A stretch of DNA of 64,000 nt from Kudoa neothunni (taxonomy: Eukaryota > Animalia > Cnidaria), in contig OZ199840.1 of NCBI GenBank assembly GCA_964304625.1, positions 8,519,487 to 8,583,486 of the forward strand, written 5' to 3'. A model generated the notes under the pieces. It did no database searches. It saw nothing but the letters and a program-made list of their open reading frames with translations, and was not told the origin of the DNA. Position 1 is the stretch's first letter. The number at the start of each line of letters is the position of its first letter. Positions 803 through 28,740 of the stretch are shown here, piece after piece. A program made the translations under genes and the position numbers.

Positions 803-2632
803 CTAAAATTTTAAATAGGTTTCATTATTCAGTTGGTTCGTTGGATAGTTATATAGAAGGGTTGCAATCTGTCTTCTCATCAGTATCAAAACGACACCTA
901 TCGCGCCAATCACAATAATAACCAAAACCCCCACAGTTATCCCAACAATGGCTGCTGTGGAGAGTGAGTTAGCTGAAGTAATATCAACTATTATTGCTCT
1001 TTTCAAAAAACGTGGATCAGTGTAGGCGTATCCATCAAGAAAAGAATAATCCGACATCTAAAAAACGAATGCAGATGTTGACATCAGAATAAATATAAGA
1101 GAGGATACTTTAAGGGTGTGTTTTAATTTTAACTTTTCAGTGTTAAATTCCAAGTATAGTAAATAATGTTGTAACATGATGCATTCAGTTAACCAATTTG
1201 GATATTCAGTCTATGATTGGATGAATAAATAAATAAATAAATTAATAGAGTAAGAAAGTAAATTTACATCCCAATTAGGCTTAAATTTAAAATATTCATC
1301 ACATTTAGAAATGAGAAGAGGTCGTATTTCGTTTAGTTTCGCAGGTATACTTTGACTTTGGGTTGTGGAGGTTAGATCTGGAAAATATGTCTAAAATTAA
1401 TCAATAAAGACAATATTCATTAGGATTTTACAATTATCTCATTAATTGAAGTAACATTAAACGGGATTGGTTTTGCTACGTCACAAATTTTTTTGAATAT
1501 TTTCTTATTATCATCTAAAAATGTCAGTACGGATAGTTTGCAACGCTCAATTTTAAATAAAGGATCTGCTATATATGGATGAATTTCCACAAAATTAGAA
1601 GTAAATCTTAAACAATTTTCTTGATCTTTAAGTTTCCAAAAGTCTATTACAATCCCAAGAGTTTTACATGGGCATGGATTCGAAGTCACCGTACGTCTTT
1701 TAAACGTTTCCTAAAAATTAATTTTTTTATATTCTCGATTGCTCAAAATAATACACTTGAATCAGACTCTTGAGCGGACGGATTCCATATTTCTTTAGAA
1801 TATGCACTATCTCCAACTAGAACTGTCGTAATCGTTTCATTCCACTTGATTATTCTTTTGCGAGTTCCAGGTGGTGTTTGACTGGAATTGGTGCTAGTTT
1901 GAGCAAATGTTAAAATATTTTCATCAAACGATATAAATCCATCAAAGTTTGTATTTTCCCTCTATAATTATAACTCGATAAAAGCTCGGAATTAATGCTA
2001 CGAAAGATACAGAAACGTCTTTATTGAAAAACATTTTATATGTAGCTTCATCCGCTACTTCCATGAGGTTAAAAAACTTTCGACCATGGGCGTTGGAAAA
2101 TTTCTTATATATGTGATTCAAATTATTCACATAATAATTATATTGTGACGGATAATTTTTTCTTTATTAAATATTTATCAGTTGTAAAAATGTATGTATA
2201 TGCTTTGTATATCTCCATGCAGCTCTTCCTATATATTCAATGTGAATATTCACCAAAGGAACGTCTAGAAGTTGTGGCTTTAACAAAACTTTTTGAATAC
2301 ATCCATTGATTTCCGTCTCCAACTCCAGAAATCCTGGAATATTAACAAAATTGTGTTGTGAATCTATCTAAAATATATTTGTATATTTACATCTCTGTAT
2401 ACTTTCTTCGTAGCATTCTGAGTGATCCAGCGTTTGTATTAATGGAGATTTTTGGTTAGGATCAAATCGATAAATATACGCCTTCAATCTATTTTGTGAT
2501 TCGTGTATTAATATTCCATACTATCATTAACCTTCTCATTAAATGCAAAATAATAACTTTTACCTTATAGAAATTCACGCAACTGGAATACTTCAATAAT
2601 ACAAATTATACATAAAAAATCAACATTACCAT
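803..2632 (-). CDS. CD39/GDA1 (ecto-NTPDase)-like type I membrane protein, copy 1; 9 exons; possibly decaying or alternatively spliced
   Basis: Hand-spliced exons read YGILIHESQNRLKAYIYRF (ACR1-like), IEYIGRAAWR (ACR2-like), EVADEATY (ACR3-like), DGFISFDENILTF (ACR4-like), NPC, SFLDGYA (ACR5-like), TM AIVGITVGVLVIIVIGAIGVVLILM and a tail ending YLKF. Exon 1 has an in-frame TAA (2608-2606) and the intron 3 donor is GC (2203-2202). Confidence 0.7.
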
Positions 2633-2654
2633 TATTTTATCTCTCGAAATGTAT

Positions 2655-2668
2655 TTAATCTTTCGGTA
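2655..2668 (-). promoter_or_regulatory. Family-specific upstream motif TACCGAAAGATTAA, copy 1
   Basis: Starts 36 nt 5' of the ATG; the same motif lies at nearly the same distance in all five paralogs. Confidence 0.55.
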
Positions 2669-3594
2669 AAACGAAAAGTTTTTAATTATGAATTTTAATA
2701 TTTATTTTCAAATTTAATACAATCTGTGAAATATTGTTAACGTTTAGTATATTAAATAAATTATTTCATGTTCAATTAAAATTTAAAGTTATTTTATCAT
2801 AATATTCAATATACATATCTGAGTAAAAAATTTCATCCAAATGAATTATATTTTATTTAAGTAATTAAATTAATGAACAATTATTAAAATAATTATTCTT
2901 TATCCGTAATTATACATAAATAATTACACCATCGGTACTTATCGCACGCGTCGAATTATGGAATAATTCTAAACTAATCCATAAAATAATAGCCAGGAAA
3001 TGATTAATAAAATTAAAATAATTTTGTAAACTATACAATTATTATAAGGTTCATAAACAAATTTGATTCTTTTTCAATAATATGTATGTACCATTTATCT
3101 GAAAAAGTTTCAGATAATTAAATATTCAATTTATATTATTGTAGGAGTAGTTATTAGATGATTGAATACGAGATAGTTAATTTTCAAACTTCATTAATCC
3201 AAAAAATAATATTTAAAACTTGTTTTCAATGCTTCTAAAGCTATGGGGATTTTGAATAATTTACAAAAATTCAATATTCAAATTAAAACCATTATACATT
3301 ATTCCAACAATTTTCACCTACAAGGGATTCGGGAGGAATTATTCCTAAATTTTGTTATTAAAAATTTAACAAGGATTATCGGCTAAAATTATAATAAAAT
3401 TATTCAAATATATTTATTAGATAAATTGAGGAATTAAGTTATTAATAAATTTTTTAGCAACGTGCACTTTCTCAGGCGTAACCATTCGCCTACTCATCGG
3501 TAGTCCTTAAAATTATATGATTACATTCTTAAAATATTTATAATAATTTATCTTTGCAATAATCATAAATAAAAATTACCGAATTCTAATTTTA

Positions 3595-4446
3595 TTAACC
3601 CTTCTGGGGCCAACCGATTTTAAAAACCGTGTCTGTCCAAGCGGGGTCTCGTGATACCCCCGTAAAAATAGAATTTAAACTTAATCAAATTACATCAAAC
3701 TCGTACACTCAAAAGTAAACATAATAATGAACTGGTTGACGTTACAACTATAGTAATGGATCGCCGTACGTAATCCCGGTCCCGACTGGATAACACTTAC
3801 ACATTTGCGCGTGCGCACACACATTAAAACACTAAACCAACTATAACTTAAATATTAATGAGAAGAAAATTATTTGTTTTTGTTTAAAATTACGATTTAA
3901 AAATGAATAAACATCTGGAATAGAATCAGACATTAACTCCTATTTTTTGAACCATGATGTTTAAAATAGTTCTAAATAATAATAAGGCTATCTCTGAAAT
4001 TCTCAATTTTTATCAAGAAAATCATCCGTTTCCGAATTTTTGAGGAGGGACTGTCATTGCGCCTTTGTTATTTCTATGAATTCGAGAGTACATAATTATA
4101 AACCACATTACTATGTATCTACAAAAACTTATTAATTGTTTAATCATGGTAAAAAAAGAAAGTAAACGTTTAATTCAATCACGCGCCCAAAGCAAAAAGG
4201 TACGTACCACCGATCTTCACGTGACTTTTTATTTTTCGTTTTTTTCCTATTAATTATGTTTATAAATTATTTAATGGGAATAATAATAACATTTTGAAAT
4301 CATTTTTGAAATCATTTTAAATACGAGAGAACCTTTTATTATGTGAAATACTAATGTACGTACGACCAGTCCATTACTGCATTATGTAATTTCTTGAATG
4401 TCAATAAATATCAAAATTTTTTTGATTCGGTAGGTCACGAAGGTTA
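3595..4446. mobile_element. Degenerate non-autonomous piggyBac-like element
   Basis: Left end TTAA-CCCTTCTGGGGCCAACCGATT followed by a GGGGTC..TACCCC motif; imperfect inverted match ATTCGGTAGGTCACGAAGGTTA near 4425-4446. Confidence 0.35.
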
Positions 4447-4657
4447 CAATTGAATGAGCACATTATATAGTTTTGATGTGTGCATGTATTGTTAATACAT
4501 GAAAAATTTAAACTAAAGACATGGAATTAATAATTAGAATGTAGGTGTAGGCGAGGCGAAATATTATACAACACTTTCAAGTTTTATCGGTAACGCTCAG
4601 CTGCCATATGACGGTGAAGGACTGACCTTAAGATTAAGTTCAACATATCTTTTAAAT

Positions 4658-7600
4658 CAGGGTTTCCCCATTGGGAGGTGGGGGTACGGATAACAAGTTT
4701 TGGTGTACGTGGATCATTTAAGCGATTATAAATAAATAAATATAATATTAAAATAATAAAATGATATAGATGTCACCTAAAAAATATTTATGTGAAAGAA
4801 ATATAACGCTAATTTTTCGCTAATAATTTTGTAGATATAAAAATTTCATAAAATCTAAAATTAAGCAAATAAAAACAATGTGCCAACATATACATTATGT
4901 CAGATCGAAATAAGTCGGTTGGGTTCTAATTTTAATTATGACAGTCAAAATGTGTCAACCACATCTCATTTAATCACGTTGCGTTAACCACTTTTTCATT
5001 TTTTGATGAATTTTGATTTACTAATAAAATAAAAACCTGTATTATAGTAATATTAAATTCAGTTTAAATTATTTTATTTATATGTTGAGATAGCATATTT
5101 TGAAATAGTTAGTATCGGTTTGAAATATTATTCATCAACTGGGTTGTTGATGCATTCTTAAATTAATTATTCGATGTGATCTTCAAAGATTTTTATTTTC
5201 ATAATTTAAAAAAATCTTATAGATTAATATTAAAAATACTGTGATAGAATTAGCAAGTTTTTAAACATAGTAATTTGGGCATTAGTGTAAAAATGTATAT
5301 TTTAACAATGAATAATCTTCTTTAATTTTATTTAAATACAAAAATTAAATAAAATAAAATTCATGATATAACCTCCTGAATTAAAAAAATTGAAACAATA
5401 AAAAAATATTGTTTACATATACACTATTCCCATAGGCACAACATTTAGCATTTTTTTATATTGGAATCATTACCTACAAAATCAGATCTGAAAAGATTAG
5501 AAAATGTAGTTTCATTTTTTCCACAACATGCATAAAATAAATCAGTTTAAAAATAGTTTATCATATAGCGTTAAAAAAATAATTGTAAAAAATTTTTCGT
5601 AAAAATACGTTTAATTTTATTATTACCGAATAAAACACTACTAAATATATTTATAAACTAAAAAAATGTATATTCTTACAAAAACAGCTTATACATGATA
5701 TTTAATTCAATATAACTACTAAAAAAGACATTTTTCTCCATAATATACGAAAATTTCAAAATATGAGTTCTGATAGTTCAATTAAGCATTGAACTAATCA
5801 AAAAATTATTTTAGCACATTAAAAATAAATAAATAGAAATGCAAGAAAAATAAACGAAACTTCGTAGTAAGGACGAACATAATGGAGATAACACATGCTC
5901 GAAATCTCTTTGTTGATACAATCTATGAATTTAGAAGTGACTTTTTTGGTGCTACTTTAGAGTCCATAATTTTTTGCTTTAAAAAATAAATATGAAAAAA
6001 CAGAAAAGTTTGATTAGTGAAGATGTTCTTTAGATGCCACAATCTTCATCATTACACTGTCAATTAGAGAATAAAATACCCCAATCTTGCAAGATTTTCA
6101 TGCTTATGTGTAATATTTAATGATATGAAAAATTTATTACTTAAGTCTCGTTAGCTGAATATTGTCAACCACAAATAAACAAACAATAAACAAATCCCAT
6201 AATAAAACCCCAAATAACTAATGAAGTTATCAATCTTAATTAAATAGTTAATAGATTTTTGACTAACTTTGGATAATTTGTACACTTCCTTAAATCGTAA
6301 GAGAGGTAACCGATTCAAGAAGAATAAAATATTTAATGTAAACATATTTTTAAATGAAGGATAAATACTAATTCTATCCTTTCATATTTTTAATCCTAAA
6401 GTTTTTTTCAATATGGCAAGCCACCAACAAGTTAGGAAATGGAAGGAAGGATACGCCAAATACGGTTTACTAAAAACTCGTTGAGGGTATTGAAAAACCA
6501 CAATGCGTTCTTTGTAATGTCGTTTATTCAAATTCCAACACGAAGCCATCGAAGTTGCTTCAACATTTTGAGAACAAACGTGGTGATAAAACACATGTAG
6601 GAAACGATATCCAGTCATTAAAAGTGAAAAGAGCGCGCTATGACTTAAAGGGAACATTCCCTAAATAAATCCTTGCTTCTCGCTTCATTCAAAATAACTT
6701 ATGAAGTAGCAAAGTGACCCGTCAATATTGCAGAGGCGTTGATAAAACCTTGCATTTTGGAGGCAGCAAAGATTGTTTTGGATGAAGAAGCAACACAAAA
6801 ACTCAAAGGAATACCACTATCCAATAATGCTATTCGCAATAAAATTGATAAGTGCTGATATTCTTGATCAAATAGTTTCGGATATCAAAGCATCTCCAAT
6901 GCAAGTTTCACTCCAGCTGGATGAGTCAGCGGATGTCGATAATTGTACTCAGCTCATCGCTTTCGTAAGATAAGTGAAATCCACTTCTATTGAGGAAGAA
7001 ATTATTTTGCAAGGCGTTGAATACAACAACAACAACAACAACAACAACTGCAGTGGATATTTTCGAAGTAACTAGAGGCTTTTTTGACGCCAACGGAATT
7101 CCAATCGTAACTATTGGATCTATTTGTACCGATGGGGCACCTGCTATGTTAGGAAATAAATCGGGGTTTGTTACTCATATAAAATGTCATGTTCCGGACG
7201 TGATAATCACCTATTGTATTTTGCATCGCCAAGATCTGATGTCAATAAGTTTGCCGATTGGTCTAAAATCAGTAATGGATTATTGTATAAAAATAATAAA
7301 TTTCATGCGCAGAAGAGCTCTAAATCACAGGCTTTTTAAAGCATTTTGCAATGAAATTAACGAAGAAGCTTCTGTTCTTATCTACCACCACAAAGAAATA
7401 AGATGATTGTCTCGAGGACGTGTTTTAAGTCGGGTTTTTGACTTAAAATATGAAATCGAACAATTTTTATCGGATCAAAAGTCGGATCTTGCTAATGTTT
7501 TCAAGTCCAAAAATTTCTCAATAATGTTGGCATATCTCACTGATATCTCTCAACACTTGAACGAATTAAATAATTCGCCTTCAATATGGAAAAAATGAGG

Positions 7601-7820
7601 GACAAGAATACCGAAAAAGAATATTTGATCGATTTAAGATCGTGCCAATCAATGAAACTGTTGTTTTAGTCAAGTTTACTTGAGCGCTTCTGGTGTCACG
7701 CCCTTAATAGTTATCCCAGTTTAGCGAAAAAAGCGCTGAAGACTTTAGCTCCATTTGCCACTACGTGGTTATGTGAATCAAGGGTTTCCTCCCTTTTATA
7801 CATAAAAAATAAATAAAAGT
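4658..7820 (+). mobile_element. hAT (Buster-type) DNA transposon, degenerate; right end not found
   Basis: Left TIR CAGGGTTTCCCC at 4658, preceded by TTTTAAAT (NNNTANNN target pattern); transposase remnant downstream. Confidence 0.7.
6413..7815 (+). pseudogene. hAT/Buster (ZBED5/ZBED8-like) transposase pseudogene
   Basis: Motifs RKWKEGYAKYG, KPQCVLC, SLQLDESADV, ICTDGAPAMLG, YCILHRQ, R*LSRG and dimerization region FWCHALNSYPSLAKKALKTLAPFATTWLCE. Multiple stops and frameshifts, plus an (ACA)n expansion near 7023-7048. Confidence 0.9.
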
Positions 7821-8379
7821 CCAAAAGTTAACTAAAATTTTTTAATTGTTTATTTTTCAATTGTATTTTTACGCATTAAATGCTTAAAAAATGTATATTC
7901 TTGCTACTGTATGCAAATGTATCGCGGTTAAAAGGGAATATATGCGCGTTAATCTTATACAATCCGAATTTCAACTAGTCTTAAAAATAGGGGTGTGAAA
8001 ATTTCTTATTGTTTTTTCTGAGGAAAGTTTTTTTTGGGTCTAAGAATATTATAAGGAAGTTTCTTATTTTTATTAAACTACAAAGATTGCCATAAAATTA
8101 AAAAATTATTACAAAAATTAACTTTTTTATTCAAATCATTTATTTTTTAAACTGAAGAATTACTGAATATTTTTTTCTGTGAAAACTATCCCAAATTTTT
8201 ACGGTACATGTAAGTGAATAATTAATTTTAAATTTACACTTATTAATTCACTTATCAATAATTCGTCGTTCACGTATAAATATTAATTATTGCTCATATT
8301 TAAAATAATGATTATTTTGCATAAAAAATATTTGTTATCAGAGGATTTCATAGAGTAATCGTGGAAAGACAGGAACAAA

Positions 8380-8883
8380 ATTTATTATCCTAAAAAGGAG
8401 GGATTGGATAAGATCGAAAATGTTGAGATTTACTGTATTAGACGCTGGTCAATAGCTGTATTATAACAACATAACAGACGCGGCAGTACACAATGCATTT
8501 CAATTGCATGAGACTAGGGCCCTCAATTTCCTAGTTAATACTAGCTTCAGCACAAAAGATGAATCCTCAAAATATTTGTCAGTGAAACTTTCAGAGGAAT
8601 TCAAAACGATTATACAAAATAATAGTGAAAAGACAAACGATGGGACTAGACAATGCGGACATAATGGTGTTTCCAACAGATCCCGAATGAACGATGCCGC
8701 ATAAATTGGAGTACGTGAGATAAATCCACTTGTGATGAATAAAGAATAAAGTTAATAAAATGTAGAACACGTTTTTATAAATAATTCATTGTTCTTTTAT
8801 ATATTTCAATGTTTTTTTGAAGGTAGACACAGTGTCCACCCCAGGTATGCGTGTGAGTTTTTTCCTGGGTATCGGAGGGTTAA
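8380..8883 (+). mobile_element. piggyBac 3' relic (transposase C-terminal fragment plus right end)
   Basis: Degenerate translation KKEGLDKIE..RRWSIAV/YNNITDAAVHNAFQL resembles the piggyBac KGGVD..RRW..D.A..NAY region; ends GGAGGG-TTAA (TTAA at 8880-8883). Confidence 0.65.
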
Positions 8884-9321
8884 ACTTAGAATTTTGAAGT
8901 TTCGGAAAAATTAAAAAATATTCATGTATACTATTTAATAAGTTTCATCCAAAAATGAATCTAGGGGAAAAATGTTTTGATATGTATACTATTGGGATAG
9001 ATCAATCCATGTTGCCATTTGGCATTATGTGTGTATCTTTTTAATTGTTGAAATGAGTTCTTCAATTTTTGGATATTTTTTTATCAAATTATTCATAATT
9101 TAACAAAATGCGAAATTTTTTGTTCGGCCGTTTAATTAAATTCGGATTCAAAAGGTTAACTCAGAGTACGAAAATTATAAAATTATCTTATTAGATACGC
9201 TAGGGAAATAATATAAAAATAAAACGACTCTAGCTATAAGTAATAACTTATCTTTAAACTCTATGTTTGATATAACGATTTCTATAACGGTTATATTAGA
9301 GTAATCAAATGTGTTCGGCCT

Positions 9322-11157
9322 TCAAGATTGAATTGGTTCATTGGGTTCGGAGTCAAATTTTTTCGATATAAATGGAAATTTATATATAAGGGCCGCGATC
9401 TGTTTCCTCATCAACACCAAAACGACACCTACCGCGCCTATCACAATAATAACCAAAACCCCCACAGTTATCCCAACAATGGCTGCTGTGGAGAGTGAGT
9501 TAGCTGAAGTAATATCAACTATTATTGCTCTTTTCAAAAAACGTGGATCAGTGTAGGCGTATCCATCAAGAAAAGAATAATCCGACATCTAAAAAACGAG
9601 TGCAGACGTTGACACCAAAATAAATATAAGAAAGGATACTTTAAGGGTGTGTTTTAATTTTAACTTTTCAGTGTTAAATTCCAAATATAGTAAATAATAT
9701 TGTAACAGATAGCATTCATTTAACCAATTTTCGTATTCATCCTATGAATGAATGAATAAATAAATTAATAGAGTAAGAAAGTAAATTTACATCCCAATTA
9801 GGCTTAAATTTAAAATATTCATCACATTTAGAAATGAGAAGAGGTCGTATTTCGTTTAGTTTCGCAGGCATACTTTGACTTTGGGTTGTGGAGGTTAGAT
9901 CTGGAAAATATGTCTAAAATTAATCAATAAAGACAATATTCATTAGGATTTTACAATTATCTTATTAATTGAAGTAGCATTAAAAGGAACGGGTGATGAA
10001 AATTTACATAATGTTTGAAATAGCTTCTTGTTATCATTTAAAAATGTTAATGCGGTGAGTTTACATTGCTTCTTCTTAAATAAAGAATCTGTCATAAAAG
10101 GATAAATTTCCACGTAATTCGAAGTAAATCTGAAACAGTTTTCTTGATCTTTAAGTTTCCAAAAATCTACTACAATTCCAACATTTATTGATTCACATGG
10201 GTTCGGACTCATCGGACGTTTCGTAACTGCTATCTAAAAATTTGATTATTTTATATTCTCTGTTTGCTCAAAATAATACACTTGAATCAGACTCCTGAGC
10301 GGACGGATCCCATATTTCTTTAGAATATGCACTATCTCCAACTAGAACTGTCGTAATCGTTCCATTCCACTTGATTATTTTTTTGCGAGTTTTTGGTGGT
10401 GTTTGACTGGAACTAGCGCCAATTTGAGCAAAACTTAAAGTATTTTCATCAAACGATATAAATCCATCAAAGTTTGTATTTTCCCTCTATAAATATAACT
10501 CGATAATTGCTCAAAATTAATTCAATGAAAAATACAGAAATTTTCTTATTAAAAAACATTTTATATGTAGCTTCATCCGCTACTTCCATGAGGTTAAAAA
10601 ACTTTCGATCATGGGCGTTGGAAAATTTCTTATATATGTGATTCAAATTATTCACATAATAATTATATTGTGACGGATAATTTTTTCTTTATTAAATATT
10701 TATCAGTTGTAAAAATGTATGTATATACTTTGTATATCTCCATGCAGCTCTTCCTATATATTCAATGTGAATATTCACCAAAGGAACATCTAGAAGTGGT
10801 GGCTTTAACAAAATTTTTTTAATACATTCATTGATTTCCGTCTCCAACTCCAGAAATTCTGGAATATTAACAAAATTGTGTTGTAAATCTATCTAAAATA
10901 TATTTATATATTTACATCTCTATATACTTTCTTCGTAGCATTCTAAGTGATCCAGCGTTTGTATTAATGGAGATTTTTGGTCAGGATCAAATCGATAAAT
11001 ATACGCCTTCAATCTATTTTGTGATTCGTGTATTAATATTCCATACTATCATTAACCTTCTCATTAAATGCAAAATAATAACTTTTACCTTATAGAAATT
11101 CACGCAACTGGAATATTCAATAATACAAATTATATATAAAATAATCAACATTACCAT
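9322..11157 (-). CDS. CD39/GDA1-like type I membrane protein, copy 2; 9 exons, apparently intact
   Basis: Exon 1 MVMLIILYIICIIEYSSCVNFYK is signal-peptide-like. Same intron positions and motifs as copy 1, canonical GT donor at intron 3, C-terminal TM and tail ...SEPNEPIQS. Confidence 0.85.
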
Positions 11158-11179
11158 TATTTTATCTCTCGAAACGTAT

Positions 11180-11193
11180 TTTATCTTTCGGTA
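11180..11193 (-). promoter_or_regulatory. Family-specific upstream motif TACCGAAAGATAAA, copy 2
   Basis: Starts 36 nt 5' of the ATG at 11157. Confidence 0.55.
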
Positions 11194-11799
11194 GAACGTA
11201 AACTTTTAATTGTATAACCATATCTCTGAATCTAAATACTTATTATTCGATATAATACAATTTGTCAAATATTGATATCGTCTAGTAATATTAAATAAAA
11301 AGATTATTAGCGGAGAGCTATATTAATGGTGTGCAATATTCCAAATACATTCTTTCATTCTCTATTGAAACCTTAAGTTATTTTATCGTAACCATCAATA
11401 TAGATATCCAAATAATAACTTTTAACCAAGTTAGTCTTACTTTATTTTAGTAATCAACTTTCCAATCGTTAGAGTCTAATGTATAAATGAATTTGAGGTA
11501 AATTTTTACTATAACAAGAAGTTGTCGCTTATATAAGTGGTTTGTTTTCTCTTCTGTAGGTACAATATTTTTTCTAATCTTTAAAGATAATAAGGAATAC
11601 ATTTAATAAAATTTTACGGCCAAATGTAAAAGATTACCAAAATCGTATCATATGATAAATTCTTGGGGTAAAAATTTTCCCTAACTTTATTAGCTCTAAA
11701 TGATAGATAAAGTGCTGCCTATTAAATATTTCAAATTTTAACTGTACCCGAGGAAATAATTTGAAGGTATATGGTTAATATCCATTAATAAATTATGTA

Positions 11800-15294: not shown

Positions 15295-17127
15295 TTAATA
15301 TTTTCGGTTTTCAAGATTAAGTTTGTTTTTTGGTTCTGAGTAGAAATCTTTCGGTTCATTTAGATTTTTAAAAGAATATTGTGATAATTGTTTTCTCATC
15401 TGCACTAAAACGATCGCAACCAAACATAATACAAGCAAAACCCCTCCACAAATTATTGCAGCTATAGCCGATTTTGAAAGTGAACTTGTTGATTTGACAT
15501 CAACTATTAATGCTCTCTTTTGAAAACGTGGATCGAAGTGGGCGTATCCATAAAGCCATGAATCATCTGACAACTAGTTAGCAATGTAGATAACGCTATA
15601 AAAACAAATGTAAAATAGGATACTTTAAGTGTTTGCTTGTAGTTCGATTGTTTTATGTTAAATTCCAAATATAACAAGTAATAATGTAATGTGTAACATT
15701 CATTCAACCAATGTTCATATAGTTCCTTTGAATAAATATGCCAATAAAATTAGCAAGATAAATTACCTCCCAAGGAGACCTATATTTAAAATATTCGTCA
15801 CATTTTGTAATTAGAATAGGTCGTATTTCATTCAATGTCTCTGGTATTTTCTGAGATGATCCATTAGGAAATGGAAAATATGTCTAAATTCAATTAACAT
15901 AGATAATATCCATTGTGATAATTACAATTATATTGGTTTTATAAGTAACATTGAAAGGAATTGGTACGGCTGCATCACATAATTTTTGAAATGTCATATA
16001 ATTTTGATTTAAACGTTCTAATATGATTCGTTCACACGCACTCTTGTTAAAAGTAGCTTTAGTCATAAATGGATAAAGTTCCATAACATTCGATGTGAAT
16101 TTTGAACAATTTTTTTCATTGGCTATCTTCCAAATATCTACTACAACACCAACATCTACGCTTTCACATGGATTCGTACCGATTATAGGAGTATTTTTCA
16201 TTGTGTTCTACAGAAAGTTTACAATTTAGTTACTTTCTATTTCCAAGTAAGGTACATTCGAATCAGACTCTTCAATTGTTAAGGCCCATATCTCTTCAGC
16301 AAAAGTACTATCACCAATTATTATTGTTATGTTCGTTCCATTCCAATATATGATTTTTTTAAGGGTATCAGGAGGTATTTTACTTGAGTTTGTAGCAATT
16401 TGAGCAAAGGACAAAGTACTCTCATCCAATGAAATAAATCCATTAAAATTTTTAGTTGCCTCCTATTGATGAAATTCTATAAAAATTAAAATATCCTAAG
16501 AGGGAAAATACGGAAATTAATTTAATATAAAACATCCTGTACGCGGCGTCATCACCTATTTCTATGACGTTAAAGAAGTTTCGGCCAGGGGCGGTAGAAT
16601 ATTTTTTGAATACAGAATTCAAATGTTTGTCAAAAAAATTGTAAACTTTTGGATAATAATGTCTTCAGAGAATTTCATATTTTATAAACAGATATATTTA
16701 TACCTTTTCAACCTCCATACAGCTCTTCCGGCAAATTCTACGTGAATACTTTTTAAAGGAATATCTTGAAGCTGTGGATATTTCAAAACTTTATTAATAC
16801 AAGAATTAAGTTCTAAAACTAACATCCCGTATGGTGGAACATTGTGAATATTATATTCTAAAATATTGATATTTTTAATAAATCGAAAAATTAATCTACC
16901 CTTTTTATAACATATGGAATGGTTCAGCTTTTCTATCAAGGGGGATTTTTGATTAGATTCAAATCTATATAAATAGGCCTTCAAACCTTGTGGGGATTCG
17001 TGTATTATTACTCCATACTATCATTTATATCTTAGTAGAAAAACTTAATAATTCTTACTTGAAAATATTCGTCACAAACAGAATATTCAAAAATATAAAC
17101 CAACCACACAATTATCAGAATTAACAT
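15295..17127 (-). CDS. CD39/GDA1-like type I membrane protein, copy 3; 9 exons
   Basis: Exon 1 MLILIIVWLVYIFEYSVCDEYFQ; then YGVIIHESPQGLKAYLYRF, VEFAGRAVWR, EIGDDAAY, NGFISLDESTLSF, NPC, SWLYGYA and TM AIAAIICGGVLLVLCLVAIVLV. Confidence 0.85.
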
Positions 17128-17144
17128 TATATTTTCGAAACGGA

Positions 17145-17158: not shown

Positions 17159-19420
17159 AAGCGAAACCCCTGCGAATAATATTATTTTCCTAATTTCTAC
17201 ATTTTTATGAATATTATATGTTTATAAAACAATAAGTTTTATTCATATATTAAAATATAAAACATTACCGTTCTTTTAATGATTTATAATATTCCTAGTA
17301 TATCAACTTATCATCTTATCATCCAGTGAAGTAATATATTTACTGAAAAATGTTAATAAACATAAATTTAAAAATTACATATGTAAATAAAAATCTTATT
17401 TCAACGGATATTTTTTGGAAATAATTTACCTATTAATTAATTATTTATTTATTTATTTTAATAATTTTATAATCTGCGATTTAACAAATTCCTTATACAA
17501 CGAATATCATCGTCTCTACCTAACTGTGTAATTCTCTTTAATTAATTAACAATAAAATTTTCAGAAAACACGTCAAATAGCGATTAATTCGCGATACTCA
17601 CTTAAAACTTTTAAAATTTACATGCTCTCATCGTTTTCTCCATGGCATATTTGAGAAATACGCTCAACAATTTTTCACGTAGTTTAAGGTCGAACATATA
17701 CGGCTTAATTGATAATTTGTTGATTGGATATTTTGTTATCTATTCTTTAAAGGATTTGGGTTTTTTCTAATCCCAAATCATTTTAATCCCATAATAAAAT
17801 AGAAACAGTCTTAACAATTACATTAACTTTGGACGCTTCAGTATATATTTTAAAAATTCTGAATTTTATCGTTTCGAACGTATTTTAATAAGAAGCGAGC
17901 AGAATATGCTTTTCTTAGAATCACTCATTACTCAATAGGTAATAATTACGTAAAACTAGGTTTGATAGCGATGTGCACTTCAATGTTACCACGCCCAATA
18001 GTTAGAGGATTGTTAATTTTAGTAATAGTTATTTTATCATCCTGAATGATTTGTACAAGAAAAAATGATTAATCATTCATATTAGAAAATCAACACATTT
18101 TCCATAAATTGTTTAGACCCTAATAAATATTTATAATAACAACAAATTTTTTAAACATAATACTTCGAATGAAGAAGAAATCATGATTAAAATAATACAG
18201 TTTTGCGTAATGAGAGATTAACTGGTACAAATCAGTTATTTAGAGGAAACGATAATTTTTACGCTTTTATGAATTATTTAGTGGTTTGTTAATATTTATT
18301 ACAATATAAGCAATAATAAAAATAATTATTTTTGAATAAATGCGTAATTGGATATTATAACGAAAATCAAACAACTGCAGTAATATGTAATGTTTTAGTA
18401 TATATTTTATATTCGAAATAGCAATTTCTGGAATTAAAATAATATATTTAATTATATTTTTAGCTTTTCGGCGATAAAATTGATTGTATGATTACAGATT
18501 CGAAATTTTTTGATACACAAAACTTTCAACGGATATTATGAAAAGTATCGTCTCAAAAATTCAAAAATAACAAATACAACAATTACCCTAATGTTAATAA
18601 CTTTTTTTGTTTATAAGTTAGGAAAACTGTCGAAAAATCATAAGGTCGTTAGGTTATAGCTCCCAAGACCATCCTCATTAATACTGTAGGCATTTCAAGG
18701 CGAGAAACATCTACTTTCTCCTCCCATCCTTCTACGAGAGTGTGGGAGTTTAAACCAATAAACATAATTGCTTCTGGGCACTGAAACCTACGTTTAAGGA
18801 CTTAGATTTACAGATATTTTATGCCTATTAATTCATCTCAGATAATTCAAGCATCTAATTAAACTTCCCCTATTTAATTAGCCTAACTATAACAATTCGT
18901 ATTACGTAATAGATTCACATTCGTATGGATCCGTAGACAGATTGGCAATGGGAGTCGAATATAACCACTAACTATTTATTCTCTTTAATATTTGTTGAAT
19001 TTACAGAAAATAACTTATTTTATAAAATTTTATTATACAATTTGTTGCTATTATGTTGAGTTTTAAAGAAAATTTAAATTAACCTCAACCGAATCTCTTT
19101 AGCGCCGAGATTTAACAGGGGTTTTTGATCCCCTATTAATGTAAAATAAATGAATATTTTAATATCAGACTTTAAATAAAAATTCCACAATTAATTTATA
19201 AAGTAAACAACCAACTTAACGTCAAAATTTATTGATAATATTCTTATTTATTTCTAATTAGTATAACATTAAAATTGACTCATTGAATGAACTTTAAAAT
19301 ATCTAAAATGATTATCTAGACGATATGTTTATTCAATAAAAACTTCTCAGACCTTAAATCATTTGATCAAAAAAAGTATAAACAGTTAAGCTTAAATTAT
19401 GTAATACATAGAAATCTTAA

Positions 19421-20954
19421 CCCTCGGAGCGTCTTGGGGTCGTTTTCCACCCCATTCGTGGTTTAATAAGTTATTTCCCCCTTCATAACTTATTTTGATT
19501 TTCTAGATATCCTATCTATTCTTTTATAATAATCGATAGTTATGGAAGGTAATATTAATTTTTCTTTAAACATAAAGGAATAGGTTATTTCTGAAATACT
19601 TACACCTGGCGCCTTTAGGGTCGAAAAAGACTCCAGAGTTTATTTTATTCAAGTTGTGTAAATTTATTTTGTAGAAGTTTATTTGGCGTTTAGTTATTTT
19701 TAAGGAAAAATAAACGCAGAATTCCACCAATTTTCGCGTGAGAACATTGAAAAACTTGTGACAACCATGAATTGTGTATTTTTATGTCTAGCTAAGATGG
19801 TTACTTGGAAAGCTCTTCCATTATGAGTGAAATTGAAGAATTAATCTAAAAGCAATCAGTGACATCTGATTTTAACGATTTTGACATGATATTAACAAAC
19901 CTTCCTATTCACAAAAATAATGTATGGAACATGACCCCCCCTAGAAAAACAAAGGTATGAAATTAAAACATTTTAAATCCAAATACTTGTGTAACTGCTA
20001 CATTCGTCAACAATAAAAACCATTAAAGACTTTTTGAACTTATTCCTCATTGATCAACTGTTATCTACAATTACCCGCATGGCTAATAAATGTGGTGATT
20101 ATCGCTATGATTCTTCTTATGATGATGCCGATCTGAATAATTTTCGTGCATAACTTAGCATGCTGATATAAGTGTCAAATCTTGTAGCAAAGACTGAAGC
20201 TCCAGAAAGGTATTGGGTGCTGGATAAGTGCTGTTGAGATTTTTCGAAAAGTTAAGCCACTGAAGGAATATACCAAAATCTAACGCTCACTCTACTTAGA
20301 CGATTTCGATGCAAGAGATAAAAAAAATTATGTGCATTGTGGCACATATATCAAAGTTTTACTACGATGCTCTGACTACACTGACTAGCAGAATCCATTA
20401 ATTAATTATATTCAGTTTTTTATTTTGGTTTTCTTATACAATATTTTGTCCAAGCATTGAAATTTTAAAAACTACCCAAAAAAGATAGATGATGGGTTTA
20501 AATATTACGAATAAATTCCGAGCATTTTAATCTAAGAGAAAATATTTTACTTTTTATAAAAACGCAAATAGAATGATAACTTTAATATTTATGGGGGTAG
20601 AAAGTTCCTATATCATTTATAGATGATAAAAAATTAATTCTTATTAAAATGTCGATCAAAACAAATTTATTACGTTTCATATAGCAACTTTTAGTCGGTT
20701 TATTGCATTCATGAAACTTAATAACGAATTACACGACCAAAGATTGAGCCAAAATATGCAGTCGAAAAATAACCGAACAATTAGTCGTACGACAAATTAT
20801 TTTTTATAATTTAACGTAAAAACATAAATTAATATCTAAAATTCCCATAATTAATTAAAATACTATTAGAATTGGAATTTGTTGATTTAACGGAATTTTG
20901 TGTTAGGGTCTTTTTCGACCCTAAATTCGTCAGGTGTATAGTCAATTCGGAGGG
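19421..20954 (+). mobile_element. Internally deleted piggyBac element
   Basis: TTAA at 19417-20 and 20955-58; ends CCCTCGG and CGGAGGG. Asymmetric internal inverted repeat TACACCTG..TTTAGGGTCGAAAAAGAC (about 19602-19632 versus 20903-20939). Decayed transposase N-terminal fragment KDFLNLFLIDQLLSTI. Confidence 0.85.
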
Positions 20955-21388
20955 TTAAATAAGCTTGCATATGAGGTATAGATACAAACGAAATATTTCA
21001 AAAATAAAAAAAATGTAACGATTAAATTAATAAAAAACTATATTTTAATTAAGACAGGATACATTTTAAACTTTAATGCACGAAAAAAGAAATATTAATT
21101 AATTGAATGTTCCTATTTATTTTGAACTGAATAATAAAAAAAGTCGAGACTTAAATAATTGTTTTTAAATTTGATTGAATCAATTTGTGGCAAATAATTT
21201 TTTTATAATCTAATTTTAATCTATGTGATACTTTATCTATTTCTTATTGATTTACCATAAAAAAACCGAGAGTTTGGAAGGAATCAATATAGTGTATAGT
21301 GATGACTAAAGTATTAGCCAAAAAAATTTTGTTAGACGGAAAGGTTCTACAACCATAATGAAAGGAGTAAACTAAATTTATCTTTTTT

Positions 21389-23222
21389 TCAAGAATCCAC
21401 CGTATCAATGAACACAGATCCGCCGTTGCTTGGTATAAATGGAAGTTTTCTCACGTTTCGAAAGATACGTTGTCTCATCAGTGTCATAATAACGGCTGCT
21501 ACAATCATTATAACCAAGACAACACCACAAGATATTCCAGTTATAACTCCTGTCGATAATTTATTTTTCATCGTAACATCAAGAACGACCGCTTTTTGTG
21601 AAAAGCGAGGATCAGTTTGGGAATATCCAGATAGCCAAGAATTTTGTGACTCCTTCAATATGGAACATATATAGATACAATGATAAAACTTGATGGAAAG
21701 TTATACCTACCTTAAATGTATGTTTAAATTTGGCTTTATTTATATTATATTCCAAATATAACACATAAAATTGCAATAAGAAACATTTATTAAGCCAATT
21801 ATTCAACTCAACCTTTAATGCAATTATATGTATATTAAATAATATAATTTAAATACTTGTACATCATTTCTTGATTTTAGATATTTGTCGCATTCTAAAT
21901 CGACCGCAGTTCGAATATTATTTATTTTCGGCTGTGTTACGTTAGAAGAAGCTTCACTTAGAGGAATGGAAATCTAAAATTAATTATCTCATGTAATATT
22001 CATCATAACGACACTATTATATTAGTTTTGGGATTAACGTTCATTGGAATAATCATGTTTGCGCCACATAAATTTTTGAATAATTTTTTATTGTGGTCGT
22101 TGACAATTCCTAGCAGTAAATTTTTACACGAATCTTTAACAAACGAGGGTAGGGGCAATAATGGGTAGAGTTCCATATCAGTCGATCTGACATTGGGGCA
22201 GTAATTTTGTTCCGATAATCCCCAAAAATTTATGACTGGTCCTATGTTTACACTATCGCAAGATGCTAAATCATCCAAGCTCAATTTATTCATTAAATTC
22301 TAAATAGTGTTGATCTTATTGTTTTCTCCAAGCAGAAGGATTAACCTTTTTATTGATTTCATCTAAAGATGGGCCCCATGATCTTCTAGAAAAGTGACTA
22401 TCACCAACTAGATATGTTATTTTTGTTCCATTCCAAGTTATTGATTTTTTTCTGGTACCACTAGGTGTCCTAGCGTTTTCGGTAATATTATGTGCGAACA
22501 TGAGTGTAAGTTCATCGAATGCAATTAACCCATCATAAGTTCCGGTAGGTTCCTGAGTGAAAAATCTGTAAATGCAAACAATTGCTGACATCGTTAAATA
22601 CCGCTAATATGTTATCAAATAAAGCACTGTATATGGCTTCTTCATCTACTTCTAAAAGTTTAAAGAATTTGCGACCAGCAACAATGGAATATTCTTTGAA
22701 TTTATCATTTATTCTCTTCTCATAATCACTGAAAACTGACCCATAATGTTCCCTTAGCATAATTAATTATTATTAAATAATAATCAAATTTACCTTAACC
22801 CTCTCCACACAATTCTTCCAATAAACTCCATATGAACATCATCTAACGAAACATCATGAAGGAGTGGATTATTCATGACATTCTCGATGCATTTCTCGAT
22901 ATCTAACAGTAATTCTTCAATTGGTGAAATATTGATGAGACTGTATTCTAAGCAGTCAATTTATTGATACATATGTCTAATAAACACTTTACCTTTCTCA
23001 TGACATATATTGCGTCCTGCCTCATTTATTATAGGAGATTGTTGGTGGAGTTCAAATTTATATATATAGGCCTCCAAACCTGTCAGTGTTTGATGTAGTA
23101 ATACCCCAAACTATCATTTAACCATTCAATGTTTTCACAAATAAAAAAAATACTTTGATGTTACTCTCACAGATTAAATGCTCAACAAGATAAAACAAAC
23201 ACAAAACTCCAATTATTTTCAT
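21389..23222 (-). CDS. CD39/GDA1-like type I membrane protein, copy 4; 9 exons
   Basis: Exon 1 MKIIGVLCLFYLVEHLICESNIK; then FGVLLHQTLTGLEAYIYKF, MEFIGRIVWR, EVDEEAIY, DGLIAFDELTLMF, SWLSGYS and TM VITGISCGVVLVIMIVAAVIMTLM. Confidence 0.85.
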
Positions 23223-23245
23223 CACGGTGTCACTCAAAATATGGA

Positions 23246-23259
23246 TTTATCTTTCGGTA
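23246..23259 (-). promoter_or_regulatory. Family-specific upstream motif TACCGAAAGATAAA, copy 4
   Basis: Starts 37 nt 5' of the ATG at 23222. Confidence 0.55.
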
Positions 23260-24926
23260 ATGAAAAACCTTTTTAATATATTAATTGTAGTTGGTCGCAA
23301 AAATCTCGGATTTAATATTTTATTTTGTTTATTAAATAAGGATAATTTTTACGAAAGGATATAAAATCAGTCAGGTTGATTATTATTGGATTGTTTGGGT
23401 TAGTATATTTAACAATACAATGGTTTCAAGTGATATATTACGATTTTTGATAAAGTAAAAAATATTAAGTAGTATATTATAAATTAAGATAATCATACTT
23501 TATGGTTCCGATTTCATTAATATCGTTTCAATTACCTTTAGATTAAATTAATTTAGTTTTATGTATTGCATCAGTATTTGTATACAACCGTTGTTTGTAA
23601 CCTTAATGTATCTTAAAAAAATTAAAAATATAATTAAATGAATAATACCTATTCTACCTAATATAAAATACATGTCTACCTCATCAAAAGTTGATATTAT
23701 TTTTCTTTATAATCTACTACTATCATTTTAATTCTAGTGTGATTACGTTATTACATATTTTGTTGTTTGTATTTTCTATTTTTTAGGTTATCCAAGGCCA
23801 GTGTGGGTCATCTTAATACAAAAGGAACGAAAAAAAATGATACTCACATTAGATCTTGTTTAATTTGCTAATCGTAATTACGCTAGTTAAATTGATCTAT
23901 TGAGAGATGAAAAAAATTTATGAAAATTTCAGAAATTTCCAAATCAACACTAAATTAACTGTTAACCAAATGACTAATGAATCATCTCGTTTGTATTACT
24001 GATGGGATCCCGAGAACAAAGATATTTATTGCAATAAGGGGGATTTCTGATCCCGATAGAACGGTACACAGGCTCTCAGTTCCATTGTTGTAATTAGGAT
24101 TGGAAAAAGTTATCAACAAAAAAGTCATAAATTATTCGACTGATTTGATTTTTAGAAAGTAATCAAATGTTATCACATTTCCTCTTTCTCTTCTCTTTAA
24201 TATTTTCCCTCGTTTACATTTTTGAGTCAATTATGAACATCATTTTGTTGAAAAGCTTCAAAATTATATTATGTTAAAAGATTGCTATTTATTAAATATA
24301 CTTTTTATAATACTATCAGCTGATGAACAAGATAATCTGGTGACATTTCGAGAAATATTTTAATCAATAGGATTAAAAATATGAATTTTACTTCATTGGT
24401 CAGATAAATTGTTTTTCCATAACTTATAATAGTATTACCAATAAATATTAATTTAATAAGACAAATTTATTTATAATATTTTGCTCAAAAATATTGGGCA
24501 TGTTATTTAAAATAATAAATTTTGGAATAATCTAATTGTTCACTTTCATTAAGGATATCAATGAAAAAGTCATCAAAGTATACACTCGAAATATGTATAT
24601 TTAATTTAAAAAATTGATGAGACTTCGATTTTAACATTACATTATATAGGTAGAAATTTATTTATTAAATTTAGAAGTACTTTGTATTTATTATTGCGCA
24701 CGCGCCAAACTTAAGTTAGGAACGCGTTCATGAAACCACCTTACAACTTTCTCATATGTAAAACGATGTGATCATTTCCTTACATCATAATGTAATGCTA
24801 TTAGTGGAAATCTAATTAAATGGAAAACAATATGTAGCGATTGTTACTAAAAATTATTTGTTGAAAACCCGAGTTTTATTTCCTAAACGGGATCTCGTTA
24901 CATTCAGGCTATGTTAGCGCAATATA

Positions 24927-25015
24927 CAGTCGTTCCTGGATACTGCGTATTTTTTGTTATTTCGCAATAAATCGAATCCCCTTTCCCTATGGTGTGCAAA
25001 ATCCAGAAACGGCTG
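24927..25015. mobile_element. 89-bp Tc1/mariner/pogo-type MITE
   Basis: TA | CAGTCGTTCCTGGAT ... ATCCAGAAACGGCTG | TA: imperfect TIRs with TA on both sides. Confidence 0.7.
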
Positions 25016-26983
25016 TATTTATATAGTATATTTTTTTATTTAAATAAAATTAACTAAGAATTATGAAATATAGAATATATCGCCAAATCCTTTTTTCTTC
25101 GCGCATGCGCAAATACTAAATTGAGTTTAATCGTAATTTCAGTACCAACAAAGAAAATACTAGATCTTTAATAATTCGGATAATGATTATTAGATTGTAC
25201 TCGATACGTTAAACTTAATTATATGCGTAACTAAAGTCTCAATGAGAATAATTTCTGACTTTTTTTTCAAAAACTATTAATAAACCTTACGATTAATTTT
25301 AATAAATTTAAAAAATTGAATATTTTTTTATACTTCTCCGATTTTTCAACATATGTATTGTGTAGCATAAAATTACGAAATCCTCAAAAGATACAAGAGG
25401 ATTCGGATATCCTTTACATAACAAGAGAGTGGTCAGAAAATGTCGGCCAAAATCTCACAAAAACAACATAATAAATAATCCTTCATTATTTCTTTAAATA
25501 AAGTATTCAATATGATGTTTTTACGACACATATAACCCGATATGAAGTCATATAATGATTCTTTGTTTTAATTAGCAATGTTCCGGTACCCTCTTTTAAA
25601 ACCTCGCTACCAAGTTTCGATTTTATTTTTATATACACCAATACCAAAAAAAACGAATATTTGTGGACAACTATATCGTGAAAAAATAATTCATTATTCA
25701 GACGATTGTAGCCCTTTTATTTTACTGCCCAGACTATAGAATTCTCTTCCACATTATTAAGAAAAAGTTTTTTATGGGAGGAACTGCCACTTCTCTTGGG
25801 GTTTTTGAAAGAACATTCATCTTACTCATCTGCTCCACCAATAACTCAATATATTTCCATTTGTCGTCCAATTTCATTGATCTGGACAACGATATTTCTG
25901 CTGCCAATTTTTTTACGTTCATCCGTAATCTTTGAATTGACAATTCAATTTAGTCATCTATATAATTTAAAAAGAGAATTCCGACACGCTCTTTTGTTTC
26001 ATCATAGGTAACCTTATTAAGGTGAATTTTTACGAGGAAAAATACAAATATTTTCCACAGTGGCAGTTTAGAATGCTGAGAAATTCAGCCAACTCGCAAA
26101 TTTTACTTATTAAACAATAAGAATATCGGAAAAAACATATATTGATAATTTTTATTTCATATGAGATGCATCATTGTCCCACATATGCATTTTTTCTCTG
26201 AGGAAATCAGATAAAGATTTTGCAAACTTTTAATATTATAAATTGTATCTATCCCAAAAAATACATAATATATCATATTGATATAATTATTATTTTCTAA
26301 ATCAAAGTTTTTCCATTTATCGAATTTATGGCGGAAGTTTTCGACCAGAGTTCCCTTTTGTAAAGAATAGCCAAAAAATTATCGGTCCAGCTCGTTTGGG
26401 ACTAATTTTCAATCATTATCTATTAATATCAGCGAAATATAAATATTAAATATTTCAGACTCACAAATAAAACTAAACAAATTAATTATAATTATTATTA
26501 TTAAACAAAATAAATATATATATATTTATAATGGGAATAACTTTTCTTTATTTTTTATCAAAAAGCTATACTCCAAAAAACAAATATTTTGTATATATAC
26601 GATTATATTTTTAACTTTAGAATTATAATTTTGTTGTTAAATTTATGACCTTGTAGAAACATTACAAACGTTTTTTAGACAAAAGCTTGTTTACTCTCAA
26701 TGAAAAATAAAGAAATTGACGTATTTGTAGCATCCTGATTTGACCAGTTTAGATAAAAATGACTAATTTTCGCGTTTCAACAACAAAAAAATTTCATCGA
26801 TCCAAAACAACTGAAATATCATCTATAATATTAGTTATTATAGATTTAATTCGAACTAAATTATATCTTAAACTAAAATATCAATAAATCAAATAGTCAG
26901 CTGTTTTAAGCTTCTTCTCTAGTGAAATCAGGTCAAAATTTAATCCAATATGTATTGTATTATTGGCCGGTTTACTACTACCA

Positions 26984-28740
26984 TTATTTCCTTGATACAA
27001 AGAAAATAGCAGCAATTATCAGCACCAACAAGATAACACCAATAACTATTCCAACGATTGCTCCTTTTGAGATAGATCCACTGTTTGCAGTATCCTTCAT
27101 TTTTGCAGCTCTCGGAAAACGAGAATCGTATAAGGCGCGACCATATAACCATTCGTTTTCTGGTTCCTATTAGCATATGTAAAATCCTCGAGGAATTGAC
27201 TATGTTACACATACCTTTATGGTGTATTTTAGTTTTTGTTTCTCAACAATGAAGTCCAAATAATTTAGATAGTATTGTAGCTCATAGCAGTTAGAGTGCC
27301 AATTGATAAATTCAGTCTTTTAATGAATGAATGAATAAATAAATAAATAAAACACAAAGACTATCTCACATACAGGGACTGTTTCTGATGGCTGATATGA
27401 GGCACATTTTGTGTTTAGATCGTTACGAAGTTCAGCTAAGGTTTTAACATTCGTTCTAATTTCAGCTACTGTTATTGGGAAATAAATCTAAAATATCTCA
27501 TTCATTGTGACATTACAATAAAAATCCCACAATAATATTAAGCTCAGATGTGAAAGCGTTCAGAGCGACAGGTTCGGTAACATTACATAAACTCTTGACT
27601 AGTTCTTTGTCTCTGTTAATATATGTTTCTATTTGGGATATGCAAGTTTCCTCAACAAACGTTGCTCCTTTGGTAAACGGATATAGTTTTATATGTTTGG
27701 ATGAGATAGACGAACACTCTTCTTCTTTTGATAGGGCCCAATAATTTATTACGATTCCTGCAGTATTACTAGTGCATTCGGCCGTTGTTGTTGGACTCTG
27801 AGGTATTTGAGCGCCCTATACGTACGGATTAATTATTCTCTTCCCCCTATTAATTACCTCTCCATCTATCTTAATTGTGGGTATTGTTGATAGCATCTCA
27901 GGCATAATGCTACCACCAGCCAAGAATATATTTGTAGTTTCATTCCATATCATCTCCATTTTTTTAACTCCTTCAGTTATATTAGCCGATTCGGTGGTTG
28001 TATGGGCAAAAAATAAAGTGTTTTCGTCCAATGATATAAATCCATCTGATTTGTTACTCAAATCCTGTCAAGGCAATCATTTTTTTCACACTAATAAAGG
28101 TTGCTTAAAAAAATACTGGATTTGATTTAATGGAAACATAAGTATATGCGGCTTCATCGGCAATATCTAGCAAGGTAAAGAATTCCTGGTCGGGAATGTT
28201 GGAACGTTCCTTAAATTCTTTGTTTATCTTTGTCACATTTGAAGTGAAACTCGTTCCAAACTTTTCCCTTGGTTATATTATTAATTTATTATGTACAGAT
28301 TATATTACTTTAATGTTCTCCAGTAACCTCTGCCAATATATTCAAAGTGAATATATTTTGGTTCAACTTCCTTGAGAATTTCAATAAGCAGCACACGCTT
28401 AATACATGCTGTGATATCGGTTTTGATGGAATCGAATTTAAAAAATGTGCTTAAACTATATTCTAAAACAACAATAATGCATTTTTTCACAAAACAACAA
28501 TTGAGTAACCTTTCTCCGCACAACTATTATATGCCAAAAATTCTACTCTGGGAGATTTTTGCGAAAGGTTAAATGTGTATATGTAGGCTATCAAACCACT
28601 TGCTTCTTGATTTATTAATACTCCGTACTAGTATCAAGAAATCAAGTTTTTTTGTAAATAGAAACCTATACTCTGGCATCGGATTCGGTTTTGACGCTAA
28701 CCACAAAGTAAGCCAACAAAAGGGTTACCAGTATTCTCAT
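26984..28740 (-). CDS. CD39/GDA1-like type I membrane protein, copy 5 (most divergent); 9 exons
   Basis: Exon 1 MRILVTLLLAYFVVSVKTESDAR; then YGVLINQEASGLIAYIYTF, FEYIGRGYWR, DIADEAAY, DGFISLDENTLFF, EWLYGRA and TM AIVGIVIGVILLVLIIAAIFFV followed only by SRK-stop. Confidence 0.85.

Follow-up and report, generated by a model that had tools for sequence, protein, structure and literature searches.

Putative surface pseudoenzymes on a CD39-like scaffold form an expanded gene family in the myxozoan Kudoa neothunni

Kudoa neothunni is a myxozoan of yellowfin tuna muscle. The stretch of its genome analysed here (64,000 nucleotides, contig OZ199840.1, positions 8,519,487 to 8,583,486; hereafter the window) carries, between positions 803 and 28740 of its minus strand, five genes of one family, recognised by six-frame translation and a repeat search. 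We propose that they belong to a lineage-specific family of pseudo-NTPDases (NTPDase: nucleoside triphosphate diphosphohydrolase) derived from a CD39-like ectoenzyme, and we consider it rather probable that this family is kept as a host-facing repertoire, serving antigenic diversity or the binding of different molecules by different paralogs.

Models built from coordinates give all five copies nine exons and eight introns of 39-58 nt in phases 0,1,2,0,0,0,0,0, every intron being of the GT-AG type with the single exception of a GC-AG intron (copy 1, intron 3). The products, of 460-492 amino acids (aa), comprise a hydrophobic N-terminal segment some 10 residues long, an ectodomain with eight common cysteines and 2-9 N-glycosylation sequons, one C-terminal transmembrane segment and a short tail, signal peptides and transmembrane segments being assigned by hydropathy only. 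These models bear out an earlier reading of the DNA, made from its letters alone (the sequence-only reading), which had described five same-strand genes with matching introns, a signal peptide, conserved cysteines and a single C-terminal anchor. Pairwise identity among the window copies is 33-50%, and reaches 82% between copies 1 and 2; a sixth member of the array lies about 2-4 kb to the left of the window. The frames are clean in copies 2-5. In the case of copy 1, exon 1 differs from that of copy 2 by two single-base indels with a stop at codon 9 between them (scored as glycine in the hydropathy average of this copy). Copy 1 would be either a young pseudogene or, if the segment 2629-2591 is spliced out and the frame kept, the source of a product deprived of its signal peptide. 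The claim that all five genes encode type I surface proteins therefore stands as regards topology, but copy 1, with its disrupted signal-peptide exon, probably yields no normal surface protein.

The descent of the family from GDA1/CD39 proteins, proposed by the sequence-only reading, is supported by an intact relative found in the same genome. On C1 at 885 kb (C1, C2 and C3 are large contigs of the assembly), a complete gene of 465 aa, L013, retains all five apyrase conserved regions (ACRs): DAGSTG at ACR1, GTGGLR at ACR2, ETEAEY at ACR3, DIGGSS at ACR4 and WTLG at ACR5. A parent-type gene with intact motifs, for which a search had been suggested, is thus present, and its sequence makes it the best candidate for the active ecto-apyrase of the parasite. 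L013 and the family share nine exons of similar lengths and all eight intron phases; six of its eight introns are placed no more than about two alignment columns away from those of the family, and for the remaining two, which fall where the alignment is poor, exon lengths and the spacing of cysteines are in agreement. All eight family cysteines are matched in the same exons of L013, which has two more (exons 5 and 6). Identity to the family members is only 13-17%. The family hidden Markov model (HMM) scores L013 at 26.9 bits (maximum of 6.9 with shuffled sequences), hhalign pairs the two at 89% (E 2.6e-7), and comparison of the family with an ENTPD4/7 alignment gives E 7e-4, the profile match lying in the C-terminal half; L013 itself matches the ENTPD4/7 HMM (E 1.3e-9) and, by its exon 2, Pfam GDA1_CD39 (E 3e-4). 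Since exon 6 alone gives no significant alignment with the intact gene, it is tied to that gene by its length, its phase and the spacing of its cysteines.

The predicted fold of the N-terminal lobe points the same way. A read-through of copy 3 exons 2 and 3 modelled with AlphaFold (AF2; predicted local distance difference test, pLDDT, 69; intron disordered) consists of three strands, a helix, a strand and a helix. The top two of 48,161 chains compared with this model are NTPDases (5u7p and 6wg5; Z 6.2, rmsd, the root-mean-square deviation, 3.2 Å over 79 residues), with an RNase H domain nearly level at Z 6.1 and other ASKHA proteins lower, and the top Atlas row is GDA1_CD39 (template-modelling score, TM, 0.53). 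The fold check proposed by the sequence-only reading was favourable in this respect, but Foldseek with the same model returned ASKHA members, including NTPDase1/2, none of them significant.

L013 also has a short, signal-peptide-like N-terminal hydrophobic stretch and one C-terminal transmembrane segment, as judged by hydropathy. Because the intact gene already has this layout, the idea that the copies were converted to type I proteins when they lost activity is not borne out. GTGGLR in place of ATAGMR at ACR2, and the apparent type I topology, are both unusual among NTPDases. A candidate close paralog of L013 lies at C3:5.32 Mb (Table 1).

The former active site has lost the residues with which NTPDases hold metal and phosphates. 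In productive NTPDase complexes the aspartates of both DxG motifs are always found around the metal (PMC12489842); DxG(S/G) occurs in none of the 16 family copies modelled over the whole genome, at either ACR1 or ACR4. The ACR1 Asp position is occupied by His in 12 of the 16 and otherwise by Tyr or Asn (Asn in copy 5), the Gly being variable, while at ACR4 the Asp has given way mostly to Ser, Tyr or Ala and the first Gly position is Asp, Glu or Asn throughout (16/16). The ACR2 Thr is replaced by Arg in all five window copies and survives in just one copy family-wide. The motifs reported for the window, namely those at ACR1, GRxxWR at ACR2 and G(F/L)I(S/A)(F/L)DE at ACR4, are present. Because both DxG aspartates and the ACR2 Thr are gone, canonical hydrolysis of NTP or NDP by these proteins is very unlikely, and their sequences lead us to regard the loss of activity with high confidence. 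The ACR5 Trp-x-x-Gly is largely retained (Trp in 12/16, Phe in copies 1 and 2; Gly in 15/16). The ACR3 Glu, the catalytic base of NTPDases, persists in every window copy but copy 3, and in 10/16 copies family-wide; elsewhere its place is taken by Asp, Lys, Ile, Val or Met. The description of the catalytic loops as erased is thus right for both DxG loops of all five copies, but does not extend to ACR3.

The sequence-only reading had further taken the conservation of GR..WR and DE among diverged paralogs as a sign of a new selected function. Both are kept within the window array, but not in the wider family, where the ACR2 Arg is found in 8/16 copies and the second acid of DE in 9/16. Over the 16 copies, 14 former cleft positions have a mean conservation of 0.185, all columns of the ectodomain one of 0.191 (p=0.52); being no more conserved than random columns, the cleft positions provide no argument for one new conserved site. 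The only replacements that hold family-wide are the His at ACR1, the Asp/Glu/Asn at ACR4 and, as a retained residue, the ACR5 Trp. On the other side, the invariant positions are six cysteines, one Tyr, one Phe and, three residues ahead of ACR2, a Glu in a strand; an Asp-Pro-Arg after ACR5 is nearly as constant, and all of these look structural.

The window copies, whose number genome-wide the sequence-only reading had proposed to count, are part of a set of 18 in three arrays. In the published assembly (three chromosomes, span 40.2 Mb, N50 12.0 Mb, introns of 49 nt, quality value, QV, 48.5; PMC12239612), profiles of exon 2 and of exon 4 each find 18 loci, and an exon-6 profile recovers the same set: six in the C3 array, a pair on C2 and ten that lie within 95 kb of C1. 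The assembly paper describes the RNA reads obtained from the parasite as too few, and reports a TAAACC telomere at one end of a chromosome; among the three large contigs we find this repeat at the end of C2 only. For sixteen of the loci the nine-exon model could be completed; the remaining two, both on C1, gave no closed model and seem to be frameshifted. Clean frames, splice sites and the two hydrophobic segments are all preserved in fifteen copies, whose identity to copy 2 is about 20-50%; the three broken or doubtful copies are copy 1 and the two on C1. Tree building separates the family as one clade from the intact CD39-like gene and ENTPD4/7 (100/100). Within it the two C2 copies form a supported clade, and the members of the C3 array and of the C1 array also group together in each case, with weaker support. 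Weak matches at C3:10.37 Mb, C3:2.05 Mb and other places appear once the intact gene is included in the profile, so that the total in the genome is probably larger than 18. Among 1.84 billion representative proteins the exon-6 profile matches six, of which five could be traced, to three other samples; their contigs are AT-rich, short introns and exon layout are those of the Kudoa family, and ACR2 or ACR4 is degenerate where these regions are covered. The family is therefore not confined to the K. neothunni assembly.

Some members have features of their own. The two C2 genes carry a Ser/Thr/acid-rich stalk of about 40-50 aa at the junction of ectodomain and transmembrane segment, and insertions of 0.6-3.6 kb occupy intron 3 or 4 of three C1 copies, two of which still have clean exons. 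The C1 array is adjoined by several related exons of another repeated, surface-protein-like family.

The coding sequences are under constraint and, in part, mosaic. Pairwise dN/dS (the ratio of nonsynonymous to synonymous divergence; Nei-Gojobori) lies between 0.23 and 0.66 in 14 pairs and below 1 in all of them, with dS near saturation for most pairs. With the 15 clean copies, these values agree with the view that selection keeps the proteins, and a ratio near 1, as envisaged for relics, is not seen. Copies 1 and 2 consist of many tracts that are 95-100% identical, interrupted by exon 6 (75%), with an upstream flank at 70-77%; the clustering of their differences was not reached in 5000 permutations (p<0.0002).

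The model we propose starts from an ancestral type I CD39-like ecto-NTPDase, with a signal peptide and one C-terminal anchor, whose duplicate would have been stripped of the ACR2 Thr and of the two DxG loops that bind phosphate, before tandem duplication produced at least 18 genes in three arrays. At the plasma membrane the products would display two-lobed ectodomains, glycosylated and stabilised by disulfides; expression and surface display of the copies seem to us likely. Without canonical binding of the metal-nucleotide complex they would hydrolyse neither ATP nor ADP, this task being left to the intact enzymes. Selection would hold the scaffold, that is, the cysteines, the core and the ACR5 region, and leave the cleft and the exposed residues to diverge; neighbouring copies would trade patches by gene conversion. 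The surface on offer would differ from one paralog to the next, whether for antigenic diversity or to bind a range of host molecules. The combination of a preserved scaffold with numerous copies, divergence of cleft and surface, and gene conversion fits a host-facing repertoire, and by analogy with other parasites we lean slightly towards a role in host-facing diversity.

This analogy is with two kinds of systems. Parasite pseudoenzyme expansions include the inactive trans-sialidase-like proteins of Trypanosoma cruzi, the ROP5 pseudokinases of Toxoplasma and SERA5 of Plasmodium. They resemble the Kudoa family in the duplication of an enzyme scaffold, the loss of catalytic residues and the placing of the copies at the host interface, the latter presumed for Kudoa, but they involve different folds and lineages. 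The variant surface antigens, such as the Giardia VSPs and the Plasmodium RIFIN and STEVOR proteins, are likewise multigene families with a signal peptide, a single transmembrane segment, a short tail, a divergent ectodomain and gene conversion. The Kudoa family differs from them by its enzyme-derived fold, its 8-11 cysteines without CxxC repeats and the internal position of the window array. With the E-NTPDases (GDA1/CD39, PF01150: CD39/ENTPD1, ENTPD2, ENTPD4/7, Legionella and Toxoplasma NTPDases) it shares the order and spacing of ACR1-5, the predicted RNase-H-like N-lobe and the cysteine scaffold, as well as the exon structure common to the intact Kudoa gene; it differs in the missing ACR1 and ACR4 DxG motifs, the loss of the ACR2 Thr in all but one of 16 copies, a similarity below Pfam detection and the presence of at least 18 divergent copies. 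CD39 itself has two transmembrane anchors, whereas the family has one by hydropathy, the N-terminal hydrophobic core being just about 10 residues long, much as in the intact gene. Since it fails the defining catalytic features of GDA1/CD39, we do not file the family under the NTPDases.

VSP-like and RIFIN-like genes are reported in Sphaerospora molnari, with no NTPDase-like family named (bioRxiv 10.64898/2026.02.11.705288); apyrases are mentioned neither in the S. molnari nor in the K. neothunni genome paper (PMC12239612), and the T. kitauei genome paper mentions ENTPD4 only. The literature searched contains no expansion of pseudoenzymes with the NTPDase fold or in cnidarians, and no description of this family, in agreement with the sequence-only reading; this literature leaves subscription journals mostly uncovered, so that absence is no proof. 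The family thus appears to be an undescribed expansion of NTPDase-fold pseudoenzymes in a parasitic cnidarian.

Several observations weigh against our interpretation, in addition to the kept ACR3 Glu and the near-saturation of dS. The host-facing role is argued from architecture and analogy. The evidence on fold concerns the N-lobe, with a modest Z, and the predicted model of exon 6 has no structural match. Pfam PF01150, queried exon by exon, matches neither the window exons nor the family in a search of the whole genome, which returned an ENTPD4/7-like gene on C2 and, weakly, L013; the match to Pfam GDA1_CD39 that the sequence-only reading had proposed as a check was thus negative at the level of exons. 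Standard annotation misses the family genes, exon-by-exon Pfam being blind to them. Throughout, the spliced models were searched against databases exon by exon, and the joined proteins were compared in local scripts; sequence searches of the PDB with exon-2 and exon-6 profiles gave chance matches only, and ESM Atlas features for exons 2-3 gave nothing usable. The array of the window copies is not subtelomeric. Finally, the pairwise comparisons give no sign of positive selection, dN/dS being below 1 everywhere. It was considered for exon 6 of copies 1 and 2 and rejected, the proportion of synonymous differences (pS 0.40) exceeding that of nonsynonymous ones (pN 0.21); this exon is better read, from its sequence, as an older tract spared by patchy gene conversion.

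Could the cleft have been rebuilt into one conserved new site, in a receptor, a lectin-like protein or an enzyme of new metal-dependent chemistry using the ACR1 His, the ACR3 Glu and the ACR4 acid? The replacements that hold family-wide, the frequent ACR3 Glu, the invariant Glu before ACR2 and the near fixation of the replacements inside the window array speak for it; yet the cleft is on average unremarkable in its conservation, a hairpin-turn Asp/Asn and a strand Glu can be structural, and copy 5 has Asn in place of the His, so that we hold this explanation to be unlikely. Residual or altered handling of nucleotides, by weak hydrolysis or as an ATP/ADP decoy damping host purinergic signalling, would agree with the ACR3 Glu and ACR5 Trp-x-x-Gly often kept and with the basic residues around ACR2 in the window array. 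The decoy, which the sequence-only reading had listed, is however disfavoured by the loss of both metal-linked aspartates and of the glycine-rich phosphate loops and by an acid in place of the phosphate-accepting glycine; intact NTPDases, moreover, are still in the genome, and nucleotide handling as a whole appears quite improbable.

It is just as improbable, in our view, that the genes are relics of tandem duplication under weak selection, most of them with no specific role. Three broken or doubtful copies out of 18, the high dN/dS of 0.4-0.66 and the transposon remnants between copies would be expected of relics, but not 15 copies that keep frames, splice sites, signal peptide, cysteines and transmembrane segment at about 20-50% identity, a dN/dS below 1 in 14/14 pairs, or relatives in other samples with the same layout. 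CD39 forms oligomers, and an intact paralog of the same topology exists, so that the copies might be dead partners that join the intact ecto-NTPDase in hetero-oligomers and act as its regulators or chaperones, in the manner of trypanosomatid prozymes; activators that are dead paralogs are known in parasites (PMC3663545). A regulator would be expected as one or a few conserved genes, not as at least 18 copies of such divergence, and we give this explanation the least credit.

A host-facing repertoire of pseudo-NTPDases thus remains the explanation we prefer. Could Kudoa and related myxozoans employ the CD39 fold as a non-catalytic repertoire of receptors or variant antigens, encoded by dozens of genes, in which the cleft binds a different host ligand in each paralog, or in which switching permits escape from antibodies? 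This wider proposal is speculative, and we would not count on it. If it holds, the NTPDase fold would here be put to such a use for the first time, and there would be a molecular handle on immune evasion by myxozoans, whose surface proteins are almost uncharacterised and whose persistence in fish muscle is an open question. The family provides defined, cloneable candidates, with the intact paralog as a built-in active control, for assays of activity, ligands, antigenicity and expression by stage; enzymologists will find in it a natural series of NTPDase-fold proteins in which both phosphate loops are missing.

Table 1. Positions of the genes and other features discussed; window numbering unless a contig or locus is named.
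Feature	Position	Strand	Remarks
Copy 1 (g1)	803..2632	-	exons 2632-2564, 2520-2403, 2363-2204, 2161-2011, 1961-1755, 1710-1432, 1390-1268, 1210-1109, 1057-803
Possible new 39-nt GT-AG intron, copy 1	2591..2629	-	spans signal-peptide core and stop codon; acceptor AG absent in copy 2
Copy 1 exon 6	1432..1710	-	75% identical to copy 2; neighbouring exons and introns mostly 88-100%
Copy 2 (g2)	9322..11157	-	intact, 491 aa; exons 11157-11089, 11045-10928, 10888-10729, 10686-10536, 10486-10280, 10233-9955, 9913-9791, 9741-9640, 9588-9322
Copy 3 (g3)	15295..17127	-	intact, 492 aa; Asp instead of Glu at ACR3; 9 N-glycosylation sequons in the ectodomain
N-lobe fold-test segment (copy 3 exon 2, open intron, exon 3)	16706..17017	-	ACR1 to ACR2; best matches NTPDases
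Copy 4 (g4)	21389..23222	-	intact, 488 aa
Copy 5 (g5)	26984..28740	-	intact, 460 aa; cytoplasmic tail almost nil; deepest branch of the array
Intact CD39-like gene	G000:C1, L013:3080-4850	-	all five ACRs
Candidate close paralog of L013	G000:C3:5318106-5319240	-	35-51% identity, three exons
C2 members with stalk	L005:3538-3921; L006:1992-2414
C1 copies with intron insertions	L007:906-4502; L011:2381-2983; L022 start
Exons of another repeated family	L025:705-8099
Aldo-keto reductase	L017:1785-2477	-
hAT/ZBED-like remnant	6400-7800	+
Nucleoporin-like gene	34124-35953	+
Intronless frame	41167-44304	-	1043 aa
piggyBac-like transposase	61500-63312	+	PF13843, E 4e-32

Other features were noted in passing. 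A decayed hAT/ZBED-like transposase remnant, recognised by eye, lies between copies 1 and 2 (Pfam was negative for the piece tested), and a fragmented piggyBac-like transposase is found near the right end of the window. Between these, a gene with a Ser/Thr/Asn-rich region of FG-like motifs followed by a Ran-binding-domain-like exon has by eye the look of a Nup50/Nup358-type nucleoporin, with no Pfam match. A long intronless frame would encode a protein that is helical or coiled-coil-like, with a C-terminal transmembrane segment and no Pfam or Atlas match; its lack of introns is unusual in a genome that has one about every 110 nt. Elsewhere in the assembly, an aldo-keto reductase has its best match, at 83%, in UniProt B5X720, labelled Salmo salar, its named relatives reaching at most 52%; judging from these identities, B5X720 probably comes from a myxozoan that contaminated a salmon cDNA library.

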